Virus record (IMG/VR): IMGVR_UViG_3300017971_000185
Span: 310,001 to 374,000 of that record
Length of the DNA stretch: 64,000 nt
Direction: 5' to 3' (one strand)
Shown here: piece after piece, positions 690 through 60,067 of the stretch
How the letters are laid out: every line of letters starts with the position of its first letter
Numbering within the stretch: position 1 is the stretch's first letter
The notes under the pieces: generated by a model
What the model saw: the letters and a program-made list of their open reading frames with translations, nothing else
The model's database searches: none
What the model was told of the DNA's origin: nothing
Position numbers and translations under genes: made by a program

Positions 690-707
690 GTAGTGCGTCC
701 AGAACGC

Positions 708-781
708 GCGCTGAGAGGGGGTCGAACCCTCGACCTTCCGGGCGAATACCCCGGCTGCTCGGCCTACTGAGCTTCCAGCGC
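708..781 (-). ncRNA. tRNA-like cloverleaf with a non-canonical anticodon loop, in the 5' region of the Pth-like gene
   Basis: Acceptor GCGCTGG/TCAGCGC, D arm GCTC/GAGC, stem CCGGG/CCCGG with loop GTATTCG, T arm GAGGG-TTCGACC-CCCTC. Confidence 0.7.
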
Positions 782-2998: not shown

Positions 2999-3514
2999 GG
3001 TCCTACTTCACGATCTTCCATAGCCTACCTATCGAGAGGCTGTTTGGGGTAAGGTGTTCTATCATGGTGTTGGAAGCACTACCGAAGACGGAGCGCATTC
3101 GGCGGCTGATAAAGAAGGCGGATTTGGCAGTTGAGCTTGCGAGGCTGTCGCTCCCAGCGCACTCGAGTCTTGAGGAAGTTGAGGAGAAAGCTCTCAAGTA
3201 CATGAGTCTCACGAACAAGGAGATTCAGGCTCGGATTCGGAAGAAGCAGAAGTAACGTGGATTCGTGGGCGTGTGTGTAAGATGAGAGATGCGTGGGACG
3301 TGGAGGGCGAGGAGTCCGTAGCTCTCGTGAAGTGGTGTGACAAGCGGAAGTGCCTCCGAATCGGCGTACCACAAGGCGGCTGCCGAGGAGCTAGCGGTGC
3401 AAACGGGAGAGCAGAAACCCCGATAACGCTCGGGGCCGGCGGCCCGTCTCTACCCGTTTGCGAGGTCGGCTTTGGACGGAGCCGAGGTCAACCTATCCTC
3501 GCTCCAGTATACCC

Positions 3515-3897: not shown

Positions 3898-4170
3898 ATG
3901 AAGAGACGCACGTTCATAGGCAGCCTGTTCGCGGCCCTTGGAGCGATCTGCTTCCCTTGGAAGAGACGCAAGCGCAAGAAGTCTCTAGAGGAGATCAAGC
4001 AGGAGATCCTCATGGAGTACTTTCGTTCTCCTCAAGCACGAGGGAAACTGGCTGTAGGTATGGCTTTCCCTCTCCGAATGCGTCGCAACTATGCAGAGAT
4101 TGGCAAGAGGATCTTTCTTGTGGAGGAATTGCCATCGGGCGCTCTCCCCTTCTACGACAGGGAGCCATGA
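3898..4170 (+). CDS. small protein: Tat-like N-terminus plus a segment resembling a phage major capsid protein N-terminus
   Basis: SD AAGGAG; MKRRTFIGSLFAALG followed by ARGKLAVGMAFPLRMRRNY...FLVEELPSGALPFYD. Confidence 0.5.
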   Translation: MKRRTFIGSLFAALGAICFPWKRRKRKKSLEEIKQEILMEYFRSPQARGKLAVGMAFPLRMRRNYAEIGKRIFLVEELPSGALPFYDREP

Positions 4171-4357
4171 AAGAGCACTGTACCAGACATCTCCGAAAAG
4201 GGATCAAGAAGCCAGCCGTGTACATCCTCGAAGGCGGGCTATGCGAGACTTGTTGGATCGATTGGTGGATCGAAGGACTGCACATCGAGAACCCGAGAGA
4301 ACGAGCCAAAGTACGTCGAGAGACAAAAGCTGCCTTAAGGAGAAGACGCAAGCGAAA

Positions 4358-4434
4358 GGCCGGGTAGCTCAGATGGTTAGAGCACCATCCCGACACGGTG
4401 GGGGTCCTCGGTTCGATCCCGAGCCCGGTCACCA
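4358..4434 (+). tRNA. tRNA-Val(GAC)
   Basis: Cloverleaf with CCA; loop CC-GAC-AC (C33). Confidence 0.9.
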
Positions 4435-5559: not shown

Positions 5560-6489
5560 CTAGTAGAGGTTTCTGATCTCAGGCGCAGCCGTGAACAGGC
5601 GGCAATGCGTTCCCGGTGTATAGTACCGTAACTGCAAACCGTTGCGAGCTAGTGCATGGTGGACGGGAGGATCCGAGATGCGCGTCGTGTTCTGCTGACA
5701 GGCGAACGTCGTTGTCCACGTTGCGTTGAAGGACGGGATGTACTCGTAAGCGGTTCGCGTCACACGGAAGGCTGAGCGGATGGTCTTGATGATTTCGACG
5801 TGGTGAGCATCGAGGGGACCGCTCAGGCGGATGCCTCCTGTCTGTGCGGCAAAGATGCCTCTGTCACGCAGTTTCCCGCCAATGGCCGAGAAGAAGTCCT
5901 TGGTGAACAACCGCTCAGAGAGATTGTTGCTGTCGCCCGTGTCATCGTAGGGCTCAGTGAGATCGGAGATGATCACGTTCCAAGTCTGGTTCTCGTTGAG
6001 CACAGTGGACGCGTCGGAGATGCGGACGGTAACGCGCTCGTCCTCGAATGCGCCGTGTGTCCATTCGGGAAAGAGCACCTTGAAGGTCTCGATCATGTCT
6101 TCATCGATCTCGACCAAGCAGACTTCTTTCACGTCGGGCCACTTGAGCACTTCGCGGAGAGCACAGCCATCGCCGCCACCGAGGATGAGCACACGCCCGA
6201 TGTTCTGGGCCATGACCATGGCCGGATGCACGAGCATGTCGTGGTAGATATACTCGTCACTCTCCGCAACCTGGATGCGCCCGTCTAGAATCAGAGTGCG
6301 TCCGAGGTCCGCGAAGTCTGCTAGCTGGATGAGTTGGTACTCGCTTTGCTTTTCGTAGAGGAGATCGCGGATACCCCACAGAGCGAAGAAGGATTCGCTC
6401 TCTGCCTCAAGAAACCAGCGCGGCTGTCGAGTCTCCAGCAAGTGCGGCAGAGATTCCAACGGACTAAAGATTCGGTTGGCTGGTATCAC
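5560..6489 (-). CDS. speE: polyamine aminopropyltransferase (spermidine synthase family)
   Basis: QSEYQ, LILDGRIQ, YHDMLVHP, VLILGGGDG, VEID and DLTEP motifs; GTG start overlaps the upstream TGA. Confidence 0.92.
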   Translation of the reverse strand: MIPANRIFSPLESLPHLLETRQPRWFLEAESESFFALWGIRDLLYEKQSEYQLIQLADFADLGRTLILDGRIQVAESDEYIYHDMLVHPAMVMAQNIGRVLILGGGDGCALREVLKWPDVKEVCLVEIDEDMIETFKVLFPEWTHGAFEDERVTVRISDASTVLNENQTWNVIISDLTEPYDDTGDSNNLSERLFTKDFFSAIGGKLRDRGIFAAQTGGIRLSGPLDAHHVEIIKTIRSAFRVTRTAYEYIPSFNATWTTTFACQQNTTRISDPPVHHALARNGLQLRYYTPGTHCRLFTAAPEIRNLY

Positions 6490-16090: not shown

Positions 16091-16252
16091 GATTGGCGTG
16101 AGCTTGTCAAACCTCCCGTTTAGGGATACAAGGACGCCTGTTCATTTTTGCCTCAAAAGGCGTAAGTAGGAGACAAGCCTTTGTTACACCAAGGTAAGTG
16201 AATCGGAGGCGTCCTAAACGCCGACCAAATCAAACAGGAGAGATAGGAACAC

Positions 16253-16834
16253 ATGCCCGACGACAACTTTGTCCAAGATCTGGAAGATGGCGTTGAGAAG
16301 GATGCTGAAGAACGCAAACGCTCCGACATCCTCAACCGGCTTGCCACGGTGAACCCCACGCTGGAGGATCTCTTCAACGTCTGTCAGAACAGCAAGCTCG
16401 GCGACGTGATGAAGACTTTTACCTTGGACGACCTTGTATCGACGCGCCAGCCGGTCGTTGACGATGATGACGACGATGACGTGTCGGCGCCAGCACCAAG
16501 GAAAAAGCGCGGCAAGAAGAAGGCCGCCAAGAAGACCGCCAAGAAAAAGGTCGCCAAGAAGAAGGTCGCCAAGAAGAAGGCCGCCAAGAAGAAGGTCGCC
16601 AAGAAAGCGCCGAAGACCGGCAAGGCACGCAAGGCTCGTCAAAACTACGATGAGCTAGCCAAGGAAGTTCACGCCTATATGAAGAAGGCTAAGGAGCCCA
16701 TCTCGACTGGTACGATTGTGTCCGAGTTTGGCGTCAGCGGATCGCAGGCGCGCAAGGTGGCTGAGATTCTCGTTGCGGAGAAGAAGGCCAAGCGGCAGGG
16801 CGCGGGACGGGGCACGAAGTACGAGTTGAAGTAG
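16253..16834 (+). CDS. histone H1-like DNA-binding protein with C-terminal wHTH
   Basis: AKKKVAKKK repeats; GAGRGTKY end. Confidence 0.7.
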   Translation: MPDDNFVQDLEDGVEKDAEERKRSDILNRLATVNPTLEDLFNVCQNSKLGDVMKTFTLDDLVSTRQPVVDDDDDDDVSAPAPRKKRGKKKAAKKTAKKKVAKKKVAKKKAAKKKVAKKAPKTGKARKARQNYDELAKEVHAYMKKAKEPISTGTIVSEFGVSGSQARKVAEILVAEKKAKRQGAGRGTKYELK

Positions 16835-16907: not shown

Positions 16908-17492
16908 ATGGTGAAACGAGCAGCCTCACTCCTGTTGTGCGCGTGTGCGGTGACGCAAACTCCCTCCACGGCGATTCCCGAGTACAATCGCAAGGAGTGG
17001 AAGCACTGGATCGATGAAGATCGAGACTGCCAGGACACGCGACAGGAAGTGCTGATTGCTGAGTCCGAGATTCCCGTCACCTTCAAGACCGAGCGTCAGT
17101 GCCGGGTCATCTCGGGTCGCTGGGTTGATCCCTACACAAACAAGATGATCACTGATCCGGGGTTGCTCGACATCGATCACGTGGTTGCGCTCCGCGATGC
17201 GCATGATTCGGGCGGCCATGCTTGGGACGCTGACAAGAAACGAGACTTCGCGAACGATCTCTTCGATCCCGCTCATCTGATGGCCGTCGATCGTTCGGTC
17301 AATCGCAGTAAAGGTTCCCGAGGCCCCGATGCATGGTTACCACCAAACCCAGCTTACCGGTGCGAGTACATCCGAAGCTGGGTGGCGATCATGGGGCAGT
17401 GGGATCTGGACATGACGATTCCCGAAGCCACGATGATTGAGTACATGCTCCGCGTCTGTGATTCAGGTTGTGTGCCTCCGTTGCCGCAGTAG
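16908..17492 (+). CDS. secreted HNH-type nuclease (DUF1524-like)
   Basis: DCQDTRQEVL, DIDHVVAL..AH.SG, NRSKG..GPDAWLP. Confidence 0.8.
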   Translation: MVKRAASLLLCACAVTQTPSTAIPEYNRKEWKHWIDEDRDCQDTRQEVLIAESEIPVTFKTERQCRVISGRWVDPYTNKMITDPGLLDIDHVVALRDAHDSGGHAWDADKKRDFANDLFDPAHLMAVDRSVNRSKGSRGPDAWLPPNPAYRCEYIRSWVAIMGQWDLDMTIPEATMIEYMLRVCDSGCVPPLPQ

Positions 17493-17869
17493 AGTTGGTC
17501 ATGCTCATTCCTGACGACGTGAAAGTACTCTGCAAACACTACGAGCAGTATGTTCCGGTGATCAGGGATCTGGTCACCGAGGCCAATGCGATCATCGAGT
17601 CCCAAGGTCTCACCGAGCTTTGGATCGAGGAGTATAGCGAGCCAGAGCCCTCGATGGGGATCACACCGCTCAAGAACGGCCGAGTCGGGGTCATGGTCTG
17701 GGCTCCCGTGATCAAGGAATTCGATCAAGTGCTCGCGTTTCTCCGTCACAAGGACATCGGTCTGTTCCGTGTGCCGGGCGAATCGATCGGTCGTGTCGAT
17801 GGGATCAGGCTGAGTGGCCCTGACTTCATCGTGCTTCGCGATCTCGCAGACATCCTCGGGAAGTTGTAG

Positions 17870-23277: not shown

Positions 23278-23306
23278 TTGACTTTGGCTCTGTCTGTCCG
23301 TACAAC
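23278..23306 (+). promoter_or_regulatory. sigma70-like promoter of the Pro/Arg/Leu/Tyr tRNA operon
   Basis: TTGACT-N17-TACAAC. Confidence 0.7.
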
Positions 23307-23326
23307 TGCATCTGAGGCGGAAAGCC

Positions 23327-23446
23327 ATGACACAAATGCGGAACACACTCGGGTTGAGCACCTACCAGTCATTACTGGCGGGGAGGCTCCCCTTGCGTCC
23401 GTATTTGCGCCCGCTGCCGCCACCCCGACTTAGGGGCGCCCTCTAG
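23327..23446 (+). CDS. leader peptide MTQMRNTLGLSTYQSLLAGRLPLRPYLRPLPPPRLRGAL
   Basis: 24 of 39 codons are Leu, Pro, Arg or Tyr, the amino acids of the downstream tRNAs. Confidence 0.75.
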   Translation: MTQMRNTLGLSTYQSLLAGRLPLRPYLRPLPPPRLRGAL

Positions 23447-24610: not shown

Positions 24611-24696
24611 TGGTCGGTATGCAAGAGGTTAAAGCAAGCAGTCTGTAAAACTGCCGCGTTCGCGCTTCGTGGGTTCAAATCCCTCCCGGCCAGCCA
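24611..24696 (+). tRNA. tRNA-Tyr(GTA)
   Basis: Type II cloverleaf, loop CT-GTA-AA; unusual T1-A72 and G73. Confidence 0.88.
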
Positions 24697-24722
24697 GATT
24701 CGGAGTAGAAAGGAGAAGAAAC

Positions 24723-25898
24723 ATGACACAGAAGCAGCACATCAACGTAGGAACCATCGGACACGTGGACCACGGGAAGACCACCCTCACGGCGGCCATC
24801 ACGATGGTCATGGCAGCGATCAACGGAGGCGAGATCAAGACCTTCGATCAGATCGACAAGGCGCCCGAGGAGCGTGAGCGAGGAATCACAATCAACACGG
24901 CGCACGTCGAGTACGAGTCGGAGACTCGCAACTACGCGCACATCGACTGCCCAGGCCACGCCGACTACATCAAGAACATGATCGTCGGTGCGTCCCAGAT
25001 GGACGGCGCGGTACTGCTTGTGGACGCTTCTCAGGGGCCGCAGCACCAGACGCGTGAGCACGTTCTCCTGGCGAAACAGGTGGGCGTCTCGCACATGGTG
25101 GTGTTCATCAACAAGGTGGATATTGCAGATCCCGAGATGCTGGAGCTTGTAGAGATGGAGGTTCAAGATGCTCTTGCCCAGATGGGCTTCGAGGACACTC
25201 CGTTTATTCGGGGCTCCGCGCTCAAGGCACTGGAGGCCGCGAGCGAGGGGAAGATGGACGATCCCGAGATCGAGCCAGTCAAGGCGCTCATCGCCGCGAT
25301 GGACGAGCACCTTCCGGTGCCCAAGCGAGATCGGGAGAGTCCGTTTCTCATGCCCATCGAGAATGTCCACACGATTCCAGGCAGGGGCACGGTCGTGACA
25401 GGTCGTGTGGAGAGGGGCATTCTCACCAAGGGGCAGACGGTGGAGATCGTGGGTCGGACGGACGGGAAGCCCCTGGCTGCGGTCGTCACGGGAATCCAAG
25501 CGTTCCACAAGGACATCCCCGAGGCGGCGGCGGGTCTCAACATCGGCATGCTCCTACGTGGCATCGATCGGGATGAAGTCCTGCGTGGTCAGGTAGCAGT
25601 TGCTCCTGGCTCCTTGCTTCCTCACGAGAAAGGCAAGGCCGAGATCTTCACACTCACAGCCAAGGAGGGTGGTCGTCACACTTCGTTCTCTGGCGGATAC
25701 AGGCCACAATTCTACTTTGGCGCCACTGACGTGACTGCGGCAGTCGTGCCGGAGGATGGGAAAGTCGTCGAGCCTGGCGATCGGGCCACGGTGGACTTTG
25801 AGCTAGTGAGTCCGGTTGCTTGCGAGCCCGGCATGAGGTTCGCCATCCGCGAGGGTGGCAAGACCGTAGGTGCTGGGATGGTCACGGAGGTAGTCTAA
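24723..25898 (+). CDS. tuf: elongation factor Tu
   Basis: [50 protein letters not shown]; SD AAGGAG. Confidence 0.97.
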
Positions 25899-31854: not shown

Positions 31855-32405
31855 GTGGTCTTTTCTCCTCTAGAGGCTCTACGCGAGAATGGCCCGATAG
31901 TATACTTTTGGGGGTAAGGTACTTGAAAAGATTGGGGTTTTTCGAGCGCTTTGCTGACGCTCGATCCTTTTGGCGTAGGATAGGACACATGGCCGGTGGA
32001 GGAATCCCAGTCCAGTATCTCATTCCCGAGCGCTACGTGGAGACCAAGGTTTGCCGCTGCGCTGACCATCCCGACGCTCGCGCTTCCTTATTTGAGATTG
32101 CCTTCCGTGTCGCGTGTCCTGTGTGCGGCAAACCAATGGAGCGGATCTCCAAGTGGATTGATGCCTGGACCTTAACTCTGGAGCCTGGTTGGACCGGAGA
32201 CCCGCACCCTCCGAAGGGTGCCGTCTCTATTAAAGGAAGCTGAGCCCGTGGCTCGCACTACCGCCGGTAGTGTGGGGCATGTCGGCAAACAGCGATCACG
32301 TGGTGGGATTGGTACAACGCCAACCAGGCCAGCTATCGGTGGGAGGTCATCAAGGAGGCGGAGTTTCCCGCAAACATGCGCGCGCGAGCGTGATCCAATT
32401 TCTGC

Positions 32406-32434
32406 TTGACTTCCAGCAGGAAGAGGCGTACACC
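32406..32434 (+). promoter_or_regulatory. sigma70-like promoter of the Thr/Asp/Val tRNA operon
   Basis: TTGACT-N17-TACACC. Confidence 0.6.
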
Positions 32435-32482
32435 CGTTCTAGTCGCTCCCCTTGGCAGGACAGCGACGGAAACATTCACGCC

Positions 32483-32578
32483 ATGACGAAACGCACCACA
32501 ACAACAGCTATGCTCAGTGCCCGAGTGGCCCTGCATGGCTTTGTACGTCCAAATATGGACGATACGACCCCGTGTTGA
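32483..32578 (+). CDS. leader peptide MTKRTTTTAMLSARVALHGFVRPNMDDTTPC
   Basis: 7 Thr codons (ACG, ACC, ACA) plus GAC/GAT and GTA/GTG. Confidence 0.75.
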   Translation: MTKRTTTTAMLSARVALHGFVRPNMDDTTPC

Positions 32579-32656
32579 GCGTTTCCCCGGCGTGAACCAA
32601 GACAAAGAGACAAAGCGCCGGGGGCCGCCGGTACGGGCAGGGCTGCCTAGCCGAAC

Positions 32657-32728
32657 GCTAGCGTAGCTCAACGGTAGAGCAGAGCACTTGTAATGCTCAG
32701 GTTGTCGGTTCAAATCCGACCGCTAGCT
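32657..32728 (+). tRNA. tRNA-Thr(TGT)
   Basis: Cloverleaf. Confidence 0.93.
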
Positions 32729-32741
32729 CAGAAAGGAGAAC

Positions 32742-32814
32742 GCCGCTGAAGCACAACAGGTCGTGCGTCTGATTCGTAATCAGGAGGTAGAGGGTTCGAG
32801 TCCCTCCGGCGGCT
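32742..32814 (+). tRNA. tRNA-Thr(CGT)
   Basis: Cloverleaf. Confidence 0.9.
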
Positions 32815-32826
32815 CAAGTTGAAATT

Positions 32827-32899
32827 GCCGATGTAGCTAAGTGGGAAGGCGCCGCCTTGGTACGGCGGAGATTCGTGGGTTCGATTCCCACCATCGGCT
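32827..32899 (+). tRNA. tRNA-Thr(GGT)
   Basis: Cloverleaf. Confidence 0.92.
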
Positions 32900-32901
32900 C
32901 T

Positions 32902-33049
32902 GGGAGACACAGGATCTCGTTTCGAGGTCACAAGCACGGTAAGACGCAGCATTCATAACGCTGAGACTGTGGGTTCAATCCCCACCCCCGCTTTCATGGC
33001 GGGGTAGTCAAATCGCAAGAACACCTGACACACTCTCCTGTGTCCTCCC
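32902..33049 (+). ncRNA. Y-like RNA: tRNA mimic opened in the D loop, acceptor stem closed, CACAAGC/CACTC module
   Basis: Outer stem GGGAGACACAGGA/TCCTGTGTCCTCCC; order 3' D strand, anticodon arm (CAT), T arm, CCCCGC-loop-GCGGGG, 5' D strand. Confidence 0.75.
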
Positions 33050-33094
33050 GACCCTTCCAGACTTCAACCCGCAACCCGAAAGGAGGACAATCTG

Positions 33095-33220
33095 ATGCCT
33101 GACGATGATGACGATGACGATGATCGCTTGCCCGCGTTGGTGAAGTCTGGTCTATCACGCTTGGTTGTCAGCCAAGAGGTCATGGGTTCAAATCCCATAC
33201 GCGGGGCTGGAGGTCCGTAA
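33095..33220 (+). CDS. leader peptide MPDDDDDDDDRL..., reading through tRNA-Asp
   Basis: SD AAGGAGG; 8 consecutive GAC/GAT codons ending 6 nt before tRNA-Asp. Confidence 0.8.
   Translation: MPDDDDDDDDRLPALVKSGLSRLVVSQEVMGSNPIRGAGGP
33131..33206 (+). tRNA. tRNA-Asp(GTC)
   Basis: Cloverleaf, loop TT-GTC-AG, G73. Confidence 0.9.
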
Positions 33221-33325: not shown

Positions 33326-33865
33326 ATGAACGGAGAAGCATTTGCATTTTCCGACGAATCGCGCAAAGCTCAGTTTGGCGCGACTAAAGTCTGTTCTAGG
33401 TGTCGTAGGGAGCTTCCTGTTGCCGACTTTTCGTATGCGAGCCGTGTAAAGCTCTATGCCTGGTGTCGCGACTGCGCACGGACTTATCAGCGGGAAGTCT
33501 ATCGGACGTTTGAGGGGCAGATGAAGCATCGGGTTCGTGCGGCGCGAGGAAGGGCTCAGCGATTTGGTTTAGATTTCGATCTTGCCGTTCAGGATCTTCT
33601 TGAGTTGTGGGACGAACAGGACGGGAAGTGTGCAATTTCAGGATTGCCCATGGTCATCGATAGCGAAGAGGAGAAAGGGAAGCAAGCGTTTCGTCCGTCC
33701 GTTGACCGCATCGTTCCGAAACGCGGATACGTTCGGGGGAACATTCGGCTGGTGACGACTATCGTAAACTTCGGGATCAACAAGTGGGGTCTCGATCCGT
33801 TTCTTGCCATGTGCGAAGGTGTTGTTCAAACCATAGGCGAAAGGAAGGCATACCATGACTGTTGA
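33326..33865 (+). CDS. HNH-like endonuclease
   Basis: CSRC..CRDC; GKCAISG..PSVDRI....GY..GNIRLV..VN. Confidence 0.75.
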   Translation: MNGEAFAFSDESRKAQFGATKVCSRCRRELPVADFSYASRVKLYAWCRDCARTYQREVYRTFEGQMKHRVRAARGRAQRFGLDFDLAVQDLLELWDEQDGKCAISGLPMVIDSEEEKGKQAFRPSVDRIVPKRGYVRGNIRLVTTIVNFGINKWGLDPFLAMCEGVVQTIGERKAYHDC

Positions 33866-35747
33866 AAACCTGGGGCCTGCTGAAAAGATCATCCAAGCTC
33901 TTTTGACGCACACGGACCATCTCTACCACAACCGACCGGGAATCGTGGTTGCCGACCGGCGTACCACGACTGGCGTGCGGTGGGATCCTGTCACGTGGAA
34001 GGCAGGCGAGAACGGTGAGCGTACCGTCTACCGTTTGGTGAAGGCGGGACGTAAGCAGCGTCGTGTCGAGATCGGCACGATGAACGGCGAGAACCGCAAG
34101 ATCATGAAGGACGGAGCCGAGGTAGGCGAGTACCGTCCGAGCGGCTTGTACCCCGAAGTCGCCATTTGGTTCTACAAGCAAGTTGCCGAAGTGTGGAAGC
34201 TGGACAACGAGTTTGCCGCACGTTGGGCATCGTTCGCGTTCCGTCAGGACCACCGCGATCTCAAGGTCGTTCTGGCCGCCTTCCTCTTGGTCCAGTCGCG
34301 TAAGGGCGATCCCGTCATGGACGGCATGGTCCGTCTGTTCGCGGATGAGGACTACAGGGACGTGGGCGAGGCGATGATCTTGCTCCAAGAGAAGGGCAAG
34401 GATCTCAACCCGAAGCTGTTGCTCCGCATCTGGGAGGTTCTCTCGTTGCCGGAGATCGCGGCTGTCAACCGCGAGCTTGGTTTCGGCAAGTCGGCAAAGC
34501 GTCCATTCCTGGGTCGTTGGAGCAGGGCGGTCGAGAAGTGGCTCCGCTACCGTGAAGAGAACCCGAAGATGCTGGAGGGTCTCGTCAAGGCCGGATTCAG
34601 AACCACGGTGATGACGCTTGCCCGGAAGATCGGCTACAAGCCCACGACTGATCGGTTCTTCGAAGTCCTGCGCTGGAAGCAGAAGCAGGCCGAAGATGGC
34701 CGTCGTGAGATGGCGATTGGCAAGGAAGTCAAGGCGGCCGAGTCTTGGGCGGATCTCGATGAAATGTCGATCTGCGAGATCATCGAGAAGACCAAGCCGA
34801 ATTGGAAGCGGATCGTTGGTTTGCTTCCTTCCGAGGTTGGCGTGACCCGTGCAATCATGGCTGCGGCCATCGAGGCAGGCTCTCTGTCGGACAAGGACAT
34901 CATCATCCTGACGCCGACGTTGGAGGAGCTTGGGCTGCTCAAGGTCCAAGAGATCAAGGAACGTCTCGACTCGGCCCTGGCTCGGGCGAACGACATGCGT
35001 GCGGCCAACATCGCTCGCAACGTCCGTGACAAGGAGACCAAGGAGACGCTGGAGGCGGGTGCCGACAAGGCCGCTCAGAAGGTGGTCGAGGAAGTCGCAC
35101 GCGACATCACCATCGACTTCATCGTTGACATTTCGGCTTCGATGGAAGGCGCCCTGGATGCGGCCAAGCCGCTCATCGCCAAGTTTCTCCAGGCCCTTCC
35201 GGCTGATTACGTCAATGTTGCCGTGTTCAACACGGCAGGCCGTGAGGTCAAGGTCAAGCACAACTCGACCAAGGGCGTCGAGGCCGCTTTCCGCGGCATC
35301 AAGGCCGGAGGAGGCACTGACTACGGTGCGGGTGTGCGGGCAGTCCAGAAGCACGCGACCCCGGAAGGCCACGATCGCATCATGGTCTTCATTGGGGATG
35401 AGGAAGCACGGCCGTTCGATGAGGCTGTGAGGGTGTCGGGTCTCAACCCGGTTGCCTTCGGATTCCTCAAGACGGTTCCCTTCGGAGGAGCCGCAGCGTG
35501 GCGTTATCGGCACTACGGGCCGGACGGCAACATCGCAGTGCGGGAGACGGCTGCTCGTCTCAACATCCCATGCTTCATGATCGATGACCGCACTTTCGAG
35601 GACCCCTACGCAATCACTCGCACTCTCCAGGCTTTGATTGCGGCGACTCCGGTTGGGGAAGTGACTCAGGCTCGTCCGCGTCCGCGCGTGACGCTCGTTG
35701 ATCAGATTCTCAACACTGAGTTGCTTGCTAAGCCCGCATGGGCATGA
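33855..35747 (+). CDS. Ro60/TROVE-like protein with a C-terminal vWA domain
   Basis: Long helical N-terminal region, then MIDAS motifs VDISASM, GGTD and IGDE; TROVE assignment inferred from architecture and context. Confidence 0.65.
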   Translation: MTVENLGPAEKIIQALLTHTDHLYHNRPGIVVADRRTTTGVRWDPVTWKAGENGERTVYRLVKAGRKQRRVEIGTMNGENRKIMKDGAEVGEYRPSGLYPEVAIWFYKQVAEVWKLDNEFAARWASFAFRQDHRDLKVVLAAFLLVQSRKGDPVMDGMVRLFADEDYRDVGEAMILLQEKGKDLNPKLLLRIWEVLSLPEIAAVNRELGFGKSAKRPFLGRWSRAVEKWLRYREENPKMLEGLVKAGFRTTVMTLARKIGYKPTTDRFFEVLRWKQKQAEDGRREMAIGKEVKAAESWADLDEMSICEIIEKTKPNWKRIVGLLPSEVGVTRAIMAAAIEAGSLSDKDIIILTPTLEELGLLKVQEIKERLDSALARANDMRAANIARNVRDKETKETLEAGADKAAQKVVEEVARDITIDFIVDISASMEGALDAAKPLIAKFLQALPADYVNVAVFNTAGREVKVKHNSTKGVEAAFRGIKAGGGTDYGAGVRAVQKHATPEGHDRIMVFIGDEEARPFDEAVRVSGLNPVAFGFLKTVPFGGAAAWRYRHYGPDGNIAVRETAARLNIPCFMIDDRTFEDPYAITRTLQALIAATPVGEVTQARPRPRVTLVDQILNTELLAKPAWA

Positions 35748-38845: not shown

Positions 38846-38973
38846 GCCGGACATGACCCGTGGGGGTCACCCGATTTTCCATCGGTAACGATCCGACAGC
38901 ACCACTCGCCCCTCAAGAGGGGCTCACGGATGATGTCCACAAGCACTGCCAGGTTCGACTCCTGGGTCCGGCG
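38846..38973 (+). ncRNA. tRNA mimic type A1 (open acceptor, module inserted in the variable loop)
   Basis: GCCGGAC/GTCCGGC; D, anticodon and T arms; GACA..CACTC-hairpin-..TGTC-CACAAGC insert. Confidence 0.75.
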
Positions 38974-38974
38974 C

Positions 38975-39104
38975 TGAAGCAACCAACCAGACAGGGCTCA
39001 CACGCAAAGTAGCTCATTGGGTAGAGCATCGGTATCGCAAACCGAGGGTAGCTGGTTCAAGTCCAGTCCTTGCAACAAACAAGCTCTTCAACTCGGTTGC
39101 TTCA
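38975..39104 (+). ncRNA. Y-like RNA type B1 (whole tRNA mimic nested inside the module)
   Basis: Outer stem TGAAGCAACC/GGTTGCTTCA; loop ATCGCAA. Confidence 0.75.
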
Positions 39105-39144: not shown

Positions 39145-39272
39145 GGCGGACCAGGCCCGGTGGGGGCCAACCGACTTACACTCGGCAACGATCCGACACC
39201 AACACTCGCCTCTTTCGAGGCTCCTCGGTTGAATGTCCACAAGCTAGCCTGGTTCGATTCCAGGGTCCGCCT
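39145..39272 (+). ncRNA. tRNA mimic type A2
   Basis: Paralog of A1 with compensatory changes (GGCGGAC/GTCCGCC; CCTGG/CCAGG). Confidence 0.75.
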
Positions 39273-39274
39273 CT

Positions 39275-39404
39275 GAAGCGACCAAACCCGAAAGGGCTCA
39301 CAAGCAAAGAAGCTCATTTGGCTGAGCGTCTCGATCATAACGAGAAGGTAGCTGGTTCAACTCCAGTCCTTGCACTCTGTTCAGCCCCTCAACTCGGTCG
39401 CTTC
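39275..39404 (+). ncRNA. Y-like RNA type B2
   Basis: Paralog of B1; GAAGCGACC/GGTCGCTTC; loop ATCATAA. Confidence 0.75.
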
Positions 39405-39612: not shown

Positions 39613-39765
39613 TTGGTCAATGCCAACAGATCAACCTCACAAGCATCATGTTGGTTCGAGTCCAACCTCCCCCACCCATGGGGGAGTAGCCTAACTGGAA
39701 AAGGCACCAGACGTGTAAATCTGGCGTGTAAACGCAATCAAGGTTTCTCACTCGGCGTTGACCAA
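39613..39765 (+). ncRNA. Y-like RNA type C2
   Basis: TTGGTCAATGCC/GGCGTTGACCAA; CTCCCCCA-CCCA-TGGGGGAG. Confidence 0.8.
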
Positions 39766-39769
39766 GTTT

Positions 39770-39853
39770 TTCTCCCCGAGCGACGGCGCTTTCGCCAACT
39801 CCGTCAGGACCGGAAGGTAGCAGCGGTAACGGAGGACCGGGTGCTCGGGGGAA
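39770..39853 (+). ncRNA. ffs: small SRP RNA (4.5S-like)
   Basis: Helix-8 motif GTCAGGACCGGAAGGTAGCAGC inside a hairpin closed by CCCCGAGC/GCTCGGGG. Confidence 0.85.
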
Positions 39854-39905
39854 CGTTTCACCGAGCCGGGGTCGTCGGTGGGCGCTTATCGCCGCGGAGA
39901 GGCGT

Positions 39906-40087: not shown

Positions 40088-40156
40088 ATGGACGACGACA
40101 TTAGCGACATTATCCGACATGGGTTCGTAGCTCAGTTGGTTAGAGCGCTGCCCTGA
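40088..40156 (+). CDS. leader peptide MDDDISDIIRHGFVAQLVRALP, reading into tRNA-Ile
   Basis: ATT..ATT ATC ending 6 nt before tRNA-Ile(GAT); stop lies in the anticodon loop. Confidence 0.6.
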   Translation: MDDDISDIIRHGFVAQLVRALP

Positions 40157-40737: not shown

Positions 40738-41114
<377 letters not shown>

Positions 41115-43647: not shown

Positions 43648-43680
43648 ATGTCCGGTATCCGTCTGAAACGCAAGACCTAG
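43648..43680 (+). CDS. leader peptide MSGIRLKRKT (probably leaderless mRNA)
   Basis: Contains both AAA and AAG; pairs with the 5' end of tRNA-Lys. Confidence 0.65.
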   Translation: MSGIRLKRKT

Positions 43681-47506: not shown

Positions 47507-47593
47507 ATGTTGAGTCGTCTGAATACCAGCCCGCGCAGGCCCGCTCTCGTTGAACGAGAGCGCGAGGCTGAAGTACGCCTGCGCGGGGAGTAA
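47507..47593 (+). CDS. leader peptide MLSRLNTSPRRPALVEREREAEVRLRGE
   Basis: 5 Glu codons (GAA and GAG) in the 3' half. Confidence 0.75.
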   Translation: MLSRLNTSPRRPALVEREREAEVRLRGE

Positions 47594-48705: not shown

Positions 48706-49506
48706 ATGGGCAGCAAAAGCTCACTTGGGGACCGCATGAAGCGATACGAGCAAGTGCCGCGCACATCGCTCACGCCCCGGACTCCCATGATTATCCGCAT
48801 CGATGGGCGGGCGTTTCACACGTACACGAAGAACATGCAGAAGCCGTGGGACCCGGTTCTGCGGGATGCTCTCACGGCCGCTGCACAGGAGCTTCTGCGC
48901 GAGATTGCTGGAGCGAAGCTGGCTTACCTCCAGTCGGACGAGATCTCTGTGCTCGTGACCGACTACGACAAGCTCACGTCGCAAGCGTGGTTCGACAAGG
49001 TGGCCCAGAAGATCTGCTCCGTGTCGGCGTCTATCACCACAGCCGTCTTCAACCGCGGCGTACTGGAGACTTTCCTTGGGCGCTACGATGTTCGCGAGTT
49101 GAAGGGGGCTGACGGCAGTCTCGACACAGCGATGCTTCCTCCTCCGGCACATTTCGACAGCCGATGTTTCGTGGTCCCGCGTGAGGATGTCACCAACTAC
49201 TTCGTGTGGCGCCAGCAGGACAGCACGCGAAACTCCGTCTCGGCTCTCGCGCAATCGCACTTCTCACATGAGGAGCTACAAGGCAAGAAGTGGGGTCAGA
49301 TGCAGGAGCTACTGTTCCAGGAGAAGGAGATCAACTGGAACGACTGCGAGACCTGGCAGAAGCGTGGTTGGTGTGTCTTGCGGAGCACTGTGGAGATCGA
49401 ACCGGGCAAGATGCGAGTGATCGTTGAGCCGGACCTGGAGGTCCCTGTTTTCTCCAACTATCGCGCGTACATCGAGAAGTATCTTCATTTGGACACGGAC
49501 GCCTAG
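48706..49506 (+). CDS. thg1: tRNA(His) guanylyltransferase Thg1-like protein
   Basis: IIRIDGRAFHTYT, YLQSDEIS, FDSR, YFVWRQQD..RNS. Confidence 0.92.
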   Translation: MGSKSSLGDRMKRYEQVPRTSLTPRTPMIIRIDGRAFHTYTKNMQKPWDPVLRDALTAAAQELLREIAGAKLAYLQSDEISVLVTDYDKLTSQAWFDKVAQKICSVSASITTAVFNRGVLETFLGRYDVRELKGADGSLDTAMLPPPAHFDSRCFVVPREDVTNYFVWRQQDSTRNSVSALAQSHFSHEELQGKKWGQMQELLFQEKEINWNDCETWQKRGWCVLRSTVEIEPGKMRVIVEPDLEVPVFSNYRAYIEKYLHLDTDA

Positions 49507-56927: not shown

Positions 56928-57080
56928 ATGTTTACCCCAGTCCAAACCATCGTTGAGAACGCACGCTACGCAGCACCCGCCATTGCGGCTGCCGCCGCGG
57001 GATCGTGTGCCTCCGATTGGTCAGGACTCGGTACACGGCCCAGTAGTGGTGCTCTGTCCAGGCAGAGACGCTCCGTTTAG
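56928..57080 (+). CDS. leader peptide MFTPVQTIVENARYAAPAIAAAAAGSCASDWSGLGTRPSSGALSRQRRSV
   Basis: SD GAGGT; 11 Ala, 7 Ser, 4 Gly, plus TGT, TGG and AGG/AGA. Confidence 0.75.
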   Translation: MFTPVQTIVENARYAAPAIAAAAAGSCASDWSGLGTRPSSGALSRQRRSV

Positions 57081-58100: not shown

Positions 58101-58172
58101 GCGTGTGTAGCTCAGTTGGCAGAGCATCAGCTTCCATGCTGAGGGTCGCGGGTTCGATCCCCGCCACATGCT
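58101..58172 (+). tRNA. tRNA-Gly-type body with a 6-nt anticodon loop (probably a defective Gly(CCC))
   Basis: TCAGC-TTCCAT-GCTGA. Confidence 0.65.
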
Positions 58173-58191
58173 CGAAAGGAAGAACATGAAC

Positions 58192-58559: not shown

Positions 58560-58934
58560 ATGGCACAGATCACCAAAGAACAGGTCATTGACTATCTGGG
58601 GGCCCTCTCGCCTTCGGAAATGGCTATCCTCATCGAGAACCTGGAAGAGACGTGGGGCATGGAGATGTCCCGGCCAACTCAGCAAGCACCGAAGGTCGAG
58701 CAAGAGAAGGAGGAAGAACAGACGGAATTCGAGGTCATACTTGAGAGTTTCGGAGACAAGAAGATCGACGTGATCAAGACCGTTCGCCAGGAGAAGCCGG
58801 GGATGGGTCTCAAGGAAGCAAAGGAGTTTGTCGAGTCTGCGCCGGTTACGATCGGTGAGGCGCTCTCAAAGGAGGAAGCAGAGGAAGCCAAGGCCAAGCT
58901 GGAGGAGGCAGGCGCAACGATCACGATCAAGTAA
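58560..58934 (+). CDS. rplL: 50S ribosomal protein L7/L12
   Basis: EEQTEFEVIL..GDKKIDVIK.VR...GLKEAKEFVESAP..SKEEAE..KAKLEEAGA. Confidence 0.95.
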   Translation: MAQITKEQVIDYLGALSPSEMAILIENLEETWGMEMSRPTQQAPKVEQEKEEEQTEFEVILESFGDKKIDVIKTVRQEKPGMGLKEAKEFVESAPVTIGEALSKEEAEEAKAKLEEAGATITIK

Positions 58935-59013: not shown

Positions 59014-59072
59014 AGGGACGTAGCTCAATGGAAGAGTGCCGGAAGCTGCGGGTTCGAATCCCGTCGTCTCCA
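59014..59072 (+). ncRNA. anticodon-arm-less tRNA-Ala-like RNA
   Basis: Acceptor with G3:U70 and A73; D and T arms present; only GCCGGAAGCT between them. Confidence 0.65.
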
Positions 59073-59086
59073 CAAAGGCAAGCAAC

Positions 59087-59644
59087 ATGAGGAAGGACAA
59101 ACACACACGGACATCGAAGCTGTTGTCCATGCTTCTGCGCCATCGGCCAGAGGCCGCGGGTCTCGTGTTGGATGAGGCCGGCTGGGTTGGTGTGGATGAG
59201 TTGCTCGCGGGAATCGGGAACAAACGAGGATTCGAAGTGACTAAAGACTTGCTTCGGCAAGTCGTAGATACCAACAACAAGAGGAGGTTTGAATTCAACG
59301 AAGACGGGACCAAGATTAGAGCCAGACAAGGCCATAGCGTGCGTGTGGATCTGGGGCACGAAGCCCAGGAGCCGCCCGAGTACCTGTACCACGGAACGGC
59401 AACTCGAAACCTCGCAGCGATTCGCGAGGGAGGGCTTCAGAAGATGAGCCGACACGCGGTTCATCTCTCACTCGATCTACCAACGGCAACCAGTGTTGGA
59501 TCTCGGCACGGGAAGCCAGCCATTCTCAAGATCCGGGCGAAGCAGATGCACGATGATGGCCACGTGTTCTACCTGACGGAGAACAAGGTCTGGTACACCG
59601 ACAACATCCCCGTCGCCTACATCATCTTTCCAGAGGACTCGTGA
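59087..59644 (+). CDS. kptA: RNA 2'-phosphotransferase
   Basis: SKLLSMLLRH.P, KRRF, IRARQGHS, LYHGT, R.AVHLS. Confidence 0.95.
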   Translation: MRKDKHTRTSKLLSMLLRHRPEAAGLVLDEAGWVGVDELLAGIGNKRGFEVTKDLLRQVVDTNNKRRFEFNEDGTKIRARQGHSVRVDLGHEAQEPPEYLYHGTATRNLAAIREGGLQKMSRHAVHLSLDLPTATSVGSRHGKPAILKIRAKQMHDDGHVFYLTENKVWYTDNIPVAYIIFPEDS

Positions 59645-59719: not shown

Positions 59720-60034
59720 CAATATTTCGTCACCATCGAAAAGGACAGAAGGAACAACATGTAATCATCAACAAGGAGGTCGTCATCATGCGTACCGTAT
59801 ATGCAGACCTGAACATGCGTAACCGAACCCGTGACTGGAAGATCCCGCTCGGAGGCAATACCGTTTCCCTGCGTGCGATTGCAAAGCCGGGCACGGTGGT
59901 CCGTGTGACTGACGACGATCTAGAGGTCGAGGCTATGGTCGAGATCCGCAACGGGATGCTCGTTGCGGACGCCCGCTGGAACACGCTGGCGTATGTCCAC
60001 TAGACCAGGCCCGGCTAAGCAAGGAGGAAAGCGT

Positions 60035-60067
60035 ATGGAACACGAACGATGGCGAGGCTGTCCGTAA
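60035..60067 (+). CDS. leader peptide MEHERWRGCP
   Basis: SD AAGGAGG; TGG and TGT codons; stop lies in the loop of a GCTGTCC/GGACAGC hairpin, just before tRNA-Trp and tRNA-Cys. Confidence 0.7.
   Translation: MEHERWRGCP

Follow-up and report, generated by a model that had tools for sequence, protein, structure and literature searches.

In Escherichia coli the leader of the threonine operon thrABC (thrL, RF00506) has 21 codons that start with ATG AAA CGC and continue into runs of Thr codons, and carries a terminator made of a GC hairpin and a U-tract. In the same bacterium a cognate-rich leader (pheM) attenuates a synthetase gene, pheST, also via a classical terminator. Phage-encoded tRNAs have been known for more than 50 years and their role is debated, either as codon compensation or as evasion of tRNA-targeting defences. 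A literature search, which was not exhaustive, returned no description of leader peptides before tRNA genes, phage or cellular. Here we describe a small open reading frame (ORF) that precedes three tRNA-Thr genes in a phage genome of 497,194 bp, recovered as one contig (IMG/VR record IMGVR_UViG_3300017971_000185). The stretch analysed (bases 310001-374000 of that genome, 64,000 nt, with a G+C content of 57.8%; hereafter the window, to whose positions all coordinates refer) contains 44 of the 46 tRNA genes of the genome, nearly all on the + strand. Judging from this sequence and its relatives, the locus is best described as a candidate for ribosome-mediated leader control applied to phage tRNA genes and multiplexed over many amino acids.

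The ORF (Table 1) contains seven Thr codons (two ACG, two ACC and three ACA), located at 32486-32488 (ACG), 32495-32506 (ACC ACA ACA ACA) and 32564-32569 (ACG ACC), and ends 78 nt before the tRNA-Thr(UGU/CGU/GGU) cluster. ACG, ACC and ACA are the Watson-Crick cognates of the anticodons CGU, GGU and UGU. Among stretches of 31 residues in the long ORFs of the genome, where Thr averages 6.1%, only 1.1% have seven or more Thr. A previous sequence-only reading of this DNA had called the ORF thrL-like, and had described these codons, the motif GTTGAGC over the stop codon (32574-32580), its complement GCTCAAC (32666-32672, within tRNA-Thr(UGU)) and the hairpin arms CCCCGGCG (32585-32592) and CGCCGGGG (32616-32623), all of which are indeed found where it placed them. 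The left border that it chose, 32406, is TTGACT, a -35-like hexamer followed at suitable distance by a -10-like one, and from these hexamers transcription would start near 32441. The pattern TTGAC-N16-18-TA[CGT]A[CA][CAT] has three + strand matches in the 497-kb genome, among them the Thr leader site and 23278, before a Pro/Arg leader discussed below, which is the only other copy of the Thr type near a tRNA. The promoter-like hexamers and their placement are kept in the orthologues (alignments A1 and A2).

As in leader-peptide attenuators, we thus have a conserved short ORF with codons cognate to the downstream product, but the term thrL-like refers to a possible mode of action and not to family membership. 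The phage orthologues begin with the same MKR as thrL and then have runs of Thr codons, the ORF is embedded in alternative RNA helices in the Enterobacteria and predicted to be so in the phage, and the sensing principle is presumed to be alike, i.e., the speed of the ribosome at Thr codons. However, the phage leader has 31 codons, is located upstream of tRNA-Thr genes instead of thrABC and has no terminator. Five phage leader peptides did not match Pfam PF08254 or NCBIfam TIGR02077/NF007329, in runs where the E. coli ThrL control scored 38.4, 48.6 and 34.9 bits. Neither Thr_leader nor a T-box appeared in an Rfam scan of 32380-33140 (761 nt, E <= 10), nor a T-box (RF00230) in a scan of 39 kb (E <= 0.1); the scans of the island and of this small region gave tRNAs, a signal recognition particle (SRP) RNA and sub-threshold noise only, and no leader or riboswitch. 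Of the original label, therefore, the conserved ORF with cognate Thr codons stands on comparative grounds, while the ThrL family and the terminator do not.

Other described systems share different parts of the arrangement. The pheM leader senses, as those of the phage would, charged tRNA for a component of the decoding system of the same amino acid and not for a biosynthetic operon, but it regulates a synthetase by means of a terminator, whereas the phage leaders precede the tRNAs themselves and lack one. The TnaC leader of the tna operon is Rho-dependent and senses free tryptophan through the nascent peptide. There the region of the leader stop codon is decisive and no intrinsic terminator exists, as would be the case for the phage Thr leader; however, the latter would read tRNA supply via codon runs, and no rut site or boxA-like element was identified in it. 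In T-boxes a specifier codon and the T-box sequence make direct contact with uncharged tRNA. As proposed for the phage leader, they are cis elements that read the state of one tRNA for the decoding genes of the same amino acid, but do so without translation, while the phage leader has a conserved ORF with many cognate codons. In the erm and cat leaders a drug-induced ribosome stall remodels the RNA and frees a ribosome-binding site. This translational attenuation and the proposed action of the phage leader have in common that a stalled ribosome remodels RNA without a terminator, the accessibility of a downstream site being the output; in the phage, however, tRNA supply would cause the stall and the 5' end of a tRNA precursor would be freed.

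The evidence that carries this interpretation is comparative. The two closest relatives, reached via the neighbouring 630-aa protein, have the same Thr-Thr-Thr-Asp-Val tRNA array and an orthologous ORF at the equivalent place. A 20-nt conserved block over the stop codon (invariant by construction among the sequences found with it, since it served as search pattern) recovered two more viral and 16 metagenome contigs with a tRNA-Thr(UGU) 70-110 nt downstream, the metagenome matches amounting to 120 stretches of which 16 orthologues were kept after filtering for the downstream tRNA-Thr. The Thr leader unit was found in 18 further phage or metagenome contigs, making 19 sequences with the window (alignment A2), and every orthologue is followed by three tRNA-Thr genes. 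The leader frame is open in all 19; it has 30-32 codons and a shared ATG context, and every indel inside it is a multiple of three and keeps the frame. There are ca. 17 distinct peptides, Thr-rich and ending in ...GD..(P/S/A)C, which begin with MK(R/H) in all the orthologues, that of the window being different (MTKR...). On average they have 7.8 Thr, compared to 0.6 and 1.4 in the other two frames. The number varies from 5 to 10 in the orthologues, some of which also contain Ile (MKRTTTITTTAT...), and in the Thr-rich part it is the Thr content that is kept and not the order of the residues. The 19 leaders use ACG 51, ACC 48, ACA 46 and ACT 4 times, against a background of 45/27/14/14% in the long ORFs of the phage (chi-square p = 5e-11), which bears out the match to the CGT, GGT and TGT anticodons advanced by the sequence-only reading. 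Comparative genomics had been named there as a check, and it has yielded an orthologous, invariably open ORF before tRNA-Thr. The existence of a thrL-like leader peptide with Thr codons matching the three downstream anticodons is thus strongly supported by sequence comparison.

Two observations concern the tRNA-Thr array itself. Between tRNA-Thr(GGU) and the Asp leader there is a tRNA-like element (32933-32993; Rfam 27.5 bits against a threshold of 29, no ARAGORN call). At the equivalent position ARAGORN calls an extra tRNA-Thr in the relatives L101 and L103, and a tRNA with undetermined anticodon in G003, a 619-kb relative whose contig contains L101. Another relative (L006 7306-7354) has a hexanucleotide repeat that separates its second tRNA-Thr from the third and, according to frame, is translated as (Thr-Pro)n, (Thr-Asn)n or (His-Gln)n; either an internal Thr leader or a mere simple repeat is conceivable here.

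The tRNA island of this phage would contain nine or more leaders that are each specific for certain amino acids, the Thr unit included (Table 1). The codons of the sister leaders match the downstream anticodons and most of the leaders are conserved in relatives; G003 keeps most of them and has in addition MALWLQQQQI upstream of its pair of tRNA-Gln genes. Asp is the strongest of the sister cases: its run of eight Asp occurs nowhere else in the six frames of the genome, and there are at least 13 distinct Asp-rich orthologues, all reading into tRNA-Asp. The Asp and GTA/GTG codons of the Thr leader, attributed by the sequence-only reading to the later Asp and Val tRNAs, hence need no explanation, as tRNA-Asp has its own leader. 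The Pro/Arg leader lies 41 nt before a tRNA-Pro/Arg/Pro/Pro cluster and is conserved in G003, and its codons CCA/CCG/CCC and CGT/CGC/CGA match the anticodons UGG/CGG/GGG and ACG. Orthologues were found for the Ile leader (M..SDISDII in L006, L103 and L157) and for the His leader (HTD..E.HH(H).YG in L005, L122, L167, L217, L224 and G003), and G003 retains those of Glu (...ALVEREREGE...) and Trp/Cys (MERNDNNKNFWCNWCPQGEEIG). The two weaker cases also have counterparts in G003, MFVMKRKHKL for Lys and ...SSCASSRRV for the Arg/Ser-rich tail, in which the window uses the codons AGT, TCC, AGG and AGA. A separate Lys leader, MK[RQ]K..GPK, recurs in L009, L019, L030 and L031.

Table 1. Coordinates of the Thr leader unit, the sister leaders and the translation genes in the window (SD, Shine-Dalgarno sequence; probabilities are predicted base-pair probabilities)
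Feature	Position	Strand	Description
Promoter-like element	32406..32434	+	-35 TTGACT 32406-32411; 17-nt spacer; -10 TACACC 32429-32434
5' hairpin P0	32442..32467	+	Stem GUCGCU/AGCGAC; loop CCCTTGGCAGGA 32449-32460; probability 0.99
Thr leader ORF	32483..32578	+	ATG 32483; TGA 32576-32578; 31 codons + stop; peptide MTKRTTTTAMLSARVALHGFVRPNMDDTTPC
Hairpin H1	32541-32551 with 32556-32567	+	In 3' third of ORF; probability 0.89
Stop-sequestering stem P1	32569-32581 with 32626-32637	+	Encloses P2; probability 0.78
Hairpin P2	32584-32593 with 32615-32624	+	Contains arms CCCCGGCG/CGCCGGGG; probability 0.94
Spacer segment GGGCTGCCTAGC	32640..32651	+	Partners: ORF middle ~32506-32521, or first 13 nt of tRNA-Thr, 32657-32669
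tRNA-Thr(UGU)	32657-32729	+	ARAGORN; Rfam tRNA 74 bits
tRNA-Thr(CGU)	32742-32815	+	ARAGORN; Rfam tRNA 59 bits
tRNA-Thr(GGU)	32827-32900	+	ARAGORN; Rfam tRNA 64 bits
tRNA-Asp(gtc)	33131-33207		Downstream of the Thr tRNAs
tRNA-Val(tac)	from 33211		Downstream of the Thr tRNAs
Asp leader	33080..33130	+	SD AAGGAGG 33080-33086; ATG 33095; eight Asp codons 33101-33124; reads into tRNA-Asp
Pro/Arg leader	23278..23446	+	Promoter TTGACT-N17-TACAAC 23278-23306; ORF 23327-23446 ending ...RLPLRPYLRPLPPPRLRGAL
Ile leader	40088..40120	+	MDDDISDII...; reads into tRNA-Ile(GAU) at 40121
His leader	40738..40786	+	MLTTAHTDDEPHHHTY... (...EPHHHTY...); reads into tRNA-His(GUG) at 40787
Lys mini-ORF	43648..43680	+	MSGIRLKRKT; 39 nt before tRNA-Lys(CUU); one AAA and one AAG; weaker case
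Glu leader	47507..47593	+	...ALVEREREAEVRLRGE (...EREREAE...); 52 nt before tRNA-Glu(UUC), tRNA-Glu(CUC)
Arg/Ser-rich ORF tail	56928..57080	+	...RPSSGALSRQRRSV; weaker case, stopping 5 nt short of tRNA-Arg(UCU)-Ser-Ser-Ser
Trp/Cys leader	60021..60067	+	SD AAGGAGG 60021-60027; ORF 60035-60067, MEHERWRGCP; ends 8 nt before tRNA-Trp, tRNA-Cys
EF-Tu	24669-25898		In the tRNA island
Thg1-like tRNA-His guanylyltransferase	48706-49506		In the tRNA island
Ribosomal L7/L12 C-terminal domain protein	58635-58934		95 bits; end directly abuts tRNA-Ala(GGC)
Tpt1/KptA RNA 2'-phosphotransferase	59036-59644		In the tRNA island

Two further elements before tRNA genes are of another kind. An ORF of 66 aa (4167-4367), with an Arg-rich tail before Val/Arg tRNAs, was rejected as a leader because a homologue (CxxC...CWIDWW), also with a basic tail, exists elsewhere in G003 (L228, - strand, ~3300-3497). 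In both genomes it ends inside or just before a tRNA gene, Val in the window and Ala in G003, and by its sequence it is probably a real small protein. A repeated element of ~150 nt (~38850-39002 and ~39150-39302) precedes tRNA-Ala(CGC) and one tRNA-Met. Related sequences precede single tRNAs of different identity (L005 ~16100-16310, L006 ~17400-17620 and, on the - strand, L226 ~6130-6333), and it is not a cognate leader.

The same principle is found in LR745208.1, a distant 485-kb phage that has no leader sequence in common with the window. Here a perfect sigma-70 promoter (TTGACA-N17-TATACT) is followed by MRFFTTTRTRTAGLTRKG before the same three tRNA-Thr genes; pairing between this ORF and the spacer extends to within 2-3 nt of the tRNA and has the stop codon in its apical stem (z = -2.7). 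In the same genome two tRNA-Gln genes follow a Gln run, MNQHLHHHCY stands ahead of Tyr-Cys-His, and frames rich in Glu, Arg, Ser and Ala precede matching tRNAs, with ...SERERESDSERT before Glu-Asp-Glu. To quantify the enrichment we counted cognate residues in 10-residue windows of every frame over the 200 nt that precede a tRNA head, took the maximum, calibrated it on random genome segments and permuted the tRNA labels. The resulting p values were 0.003 for the window, <= 5e-5 for LR745208.1 and 3.5e-4 for G003, with the statistic chosen after viewing the window and then left unchanged, and with the translations of LR745208 and G003 seen beforehand. Fisher's combination gave p = 0.078 for the window. 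Over 298 dereplicated tRNA-upstream regions (95 related loci) there was a weak excess (z = 2.6), with 18 regions at p < 0.05 versus 14.9 expected. This excess is small and concentrated in the closest relatives, so cognate leaders appear to be lineage-restricted or sporadic and not universal. Within a genome, as far as their sequences tell, they cover some tRNA clusters only.

RNA structure was examined by single-sequence folds, consensus folds of two subgroups (alignments A3 and A4) and base-pair probabilities for the window. The folds share one layout, namely a 5' hairpin (P0), a helix of Thr and Val codons, H1, P1 enclosing P2, and a closing helix. In helix 1 Thr codons (ACGAC) are paired with Val codons (GUCGU) and covary, while the first Thr run remains outside any helix. 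The 3' strand of H1 contains the start of the C-terminal Thr codons (ACG and the first base of ACC, 32564-32567), and this hairpin shows compensatory changes in the orthologues (helices 3 and 4). P2, the hairpin already pointed out by the sequence-only reading, is the one with arms CCCGGCG/CGCCGGG that become CCCCGGTG/CACCGGGG in orthologues, i.e., it is backed both by its pairing probability and by covariation. The P1 equivalent is paired at 96% in group i and present in another register in group iii, and it encloses one or two GC hairpins depending on the sequence. The closing helix between the middle of the ORF and the spacer (helix 2) has three covarying pairs. Altogether, 94.9% of the cells in A3 are paired, compared to 34-46% with slid partners, and nine pairs have compensatory changes versus 3.9 in shuffles (0/500 as high); the A4 subgroup and the window have the same architecture, with probabilities of 0.78-0.99 in the window. 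In the 3' half of the ORF the amino-acid changes follow the compensatory base changes. In these models the 3' part of the ORF, the stop codon and the spacer form one covarying multi-helix domain that nearly reaches tRNA-Thr(UGU). The gain in folding energy of the leader over shuffles is modest (z = -2.0).

The complementarity between the stop region and the tRNA D arm fared differently. The letters are complementary, but the stem is rejected for the window, where its probability in the transcript ensemble is ~0 and the stop region pairs locally with 32626-32637. A 7-mer complementary to the D arm is expected in 0.8% of shuffled leaders. In relatives the partner of the stop region is a GCTCAAC(A/G)CGG segment of its own, located downstream of the hairpin and upstream of the tRNA, and the resemblance of the D arm to this segment accounts for the match. 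As for P0, its loop CCCTTGGCAGGA is almost invariant in orthologues while its stem is variable. RNAalifold pairs the loop with the stop region in a G.U-rich helix without covariation, and the loop might bind a protein or an RNA or take part in a pseudoknot.

There are also hints of a link between the leader structure and the folding of the tRNA. The spacer segment 32640-32651 is predicted to pair with the middle of the ORF when the leader is folded alone, but with the first 13 nt of tRNA-Thr, at a probability of 0.98, when the tRNA is included. A segment 4-24 nt upstream of the tRNA matches its 5' acceptor strand and could form an anti-acceptor helix of 8 bp in 8 of the 19 orthologues (shuffle p 0.00-0.03 each), with a mean of 6.6 bp over the 19 sequences against ~4.4 bp for the other tRNAs of the window. 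The duplex energy between the last 45 nt of the spacer and the tRNA was uninformative (mean z = -0.9). When the RNA was masked as by a ribosome, with anchor-derived cloverleaves as reference, the mean probability of the cloverleaf over the 19 sequences was 0.38 for free RNA, 0.46 with the ribosome stalled on the Thr run and 0.33 when it stood at the stop codon, an effect in the same direction in 15 of 19 sequences that are, however, mutually related. Spacer switch, anti-acceptor helix and mask effect are suggestive only.

On balance we lean towards the view that the ORF at 32483-32578 is a translated leader which would sense charged tRNA-Thr, with the folding or 5' processing of the tRNA as output and with a homeostatic effect. 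A ribosome would translate the leader and slow on the Thr codons when charged tRNA-Thr is scarce, and its transit would depend on the three tRNA-Thr because these codons are their exact cognates. The position of the ribosome would decide which leader helices form, and this choice would leave the first tRNA with an acceptor strand and 5' flank that are either free for folding and RNase P cleavage or not. The regulated step is probably precursor folding or 5' processing, which we favour over termination given the lack of a terminator and the fact that none would fit behind five of the nine leaders, which either read into their tRNA (Asp, His and Ile) or end 5-8 nt before it (Trp/Cys and Arg/Ser). 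In homeostatic terms, a shortage of charged cognate tRNA would lead to a stall and the stall to more phage tRNA. We favour such negative feedback on physiological grounds only, as the direction is not derivable from sequence: a ribosome that halts near the end of the Thr run would occupy the closing helix on its 5' strand as well.

Several other observations weigh against this interpretation. In place of a strong SD the Thr leader has just GGAA, a purine-rich stretch ~12 nt upstream, whereas other genes here have good SDs, and a second frame is likewise open in 17 of the 19 leaders. Changes in P1 are one-sided only, the anti-acceptor match of the window itself is restricted to 5 contiguous bp, and in the window masking by a ribosome makes hardly any difference (0.32 vs 0.26). 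No convincing leader precedes the Leu, Met, Ala, Asn, Phe and Val tRNA heads in the window, and no Gln-rich one was found before the two tRNA-Gln genes of the genome, just outside the window. Before Gly a stretch of 10 residues contains 6 Gly (p = 0.014), but it was not assigned to an ORF with a start codon.

Among the alternatives, a classical transcription attenuator would keep the sensing of Thr-tRNA but have termination as its output, either without a U-tract or via Rho with a rut-like stretch controlled by the ribosome. Such an arrangement would suit the several mutually exclusive GC-rich helices predicted right after the stop codon, the position of the stop codon within a stem, which fits control at translation termination, and the A/C-rich, G-poor loop of P2, and the host may use terminators without a U-tract. 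However, no U-tract follows any leader stem in any of the 19 sequences, a generic sigma-70/terminator scan detected no intrinsic terminator in the interval from leader to tRNA for any of the leaders, and the island has about as many terminator-like sites as chance would give (18 found vs 17.1 expected). This is why we have dropped classical attenuation as first choice. Rho would find beside the leader stop only a hairpin loop of 20-30 nt, A/C-rich, the rest being base-paired, compared to the ~70 nt of a rut site, and for the five leaders that enter their tRNA or end just before it a terminator has no space at all. Termination without a U-tract or via Rho stays a rival for the Thr-type leader, although an unlikely one.

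Rather improbable, in our opinion, is an element that acts only as RNA, a structured 5' leader for processing or stability with an untranslated ORF, in which the Thr codons would be a by-product of the ACGAC/GUCGU stems or of repeats. The weak SD, the modest folding z-score, the pairing of part of the Thr run with Val codons and the constraint of the 3' half of the ORF at the nucleotide rather than the peptide level would all agree with this. But the first Thr run is unpaired, start codon, frame, length and in-frame indels are all conserved, and the three Thr codons are balanced, contrary to the bias of the genome. Nor would RNA structure explain the perfect SD and eight Asp codons of the Asp leader, the HHH that precedes tRNA-His, the W and C ahead of tRNA-Trp/Cys or the Gln run before tRNA-Gln in another phage.

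The mini-ORFs might instead be translated without being tRNA sensors, as small functional peptides or as a ribosome load that protects a long tRNA transcript. Two of them have a perfect SD and several Thr leaders resemble small membrane peptides, with a basic N-terminus and then a hydrophobic stretch. Still, it is the cognate content that is kept while the peptide sequence is poorly kept, the enriched residue follows the downstream tRNA for nine amino acids in three genomes, and several mini-ORFs have no stop codon before the tRNA, all of which makes this alternative very improbable. Chance, i.e., a Thr-rich frame and a hairpin placed by coincidence in front of tRNA-Thr in a GC-rich genome where runs of at least four Thr occur 39 times in the six frames, is effectively refuted by the comparative data (18 further contigs, structural covariation, codon usage and an enrichment replicated in two other genomes), even considering that the statistic for the window was post hoc and its combined p value above 0.05.

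If the ribosome-mediated control of the tRNA-Thr genes is real, phage tRNA output would be regulated amino acid by amino acid instead of being constitutive, and the regulated variable would be the charged cognate tRNA in the infected cell, which simple reporter constructs could test directly. Known until now from biosynthesis, synthetase and resistance genes, the leader-peptide principle would reach tRNA genes and have a terminator-free output. More tentatively, the whole tRNA island might work as a demand-sensing network in which stalling on cognate mini-ORFs is turned directly into maturation of the adjacent tRNA, a new terminator-free regulatory class; this is possible, but we hold it with some doubt. 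The conversion could occur by keeping ribosomes out of the tRNA or by switching the leader-spacer helix against the anti-acceptor helix. Such a network would allow the phage to replace exactly those host tRNAs that turn limiting, for example after the action of host anticodon nucleases. The nine leaders in one genome, together with dozens of natural variants in relatives, provide a comparative data set, and cognate leaders could help to annotate transcription units in the tRNA arrays of huge phages.

The surroundings of the Thr leader are those of a huge-phage translation island, as indicated by the tRNA clusters, by the genes for EF-Tu, a Thg1-like enzyme, Tpt1/KptA and an L7/L12-like protein between them, and by the nearest records. 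The records closest to the genome are uncultured huge phages, and its sequence is present in sediment and seawater metagenomes. The island also encodes a small SRP RNA of bacterial type (39767-39859, + strand; Rfam RF00169, 57.7 bits with a gathering score of 40). Just upstream of it lies a weak, sub-threshold match to YrlA/Y-RNA-like sequences (39649-39705, 28 bits), and the 630-aa ORF beside the Thr-Asp-Val cluster (33855-35747) contains a vWA domain and is widespread in huge phages, so that a module like that of Ro60 and Y RNA is conceivable.

Some of the tRNA genes are unusual in themselves. ARAGORN gives a 2-base anticodon ('cc') for the tRNA at 58101-58173 (Rfam tRNA 58.8 bits) and a 4-base one ('ttta') for a tRNA of LR745208.1 (L002 12332-12406); both may be frameshift-decoding tRNAs or miscalls of the program. 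Directly after tRNA-Ala(GGC) there is a tRNA-like match of 59 nt (59014-59072, Rfam 44.2 bits) that has no ARAGORN call. Finally, the sole minus-strand tRNA of the window (706-781) is a tRNA-Asn with anticodon ATT, i.e., with A at position 34.

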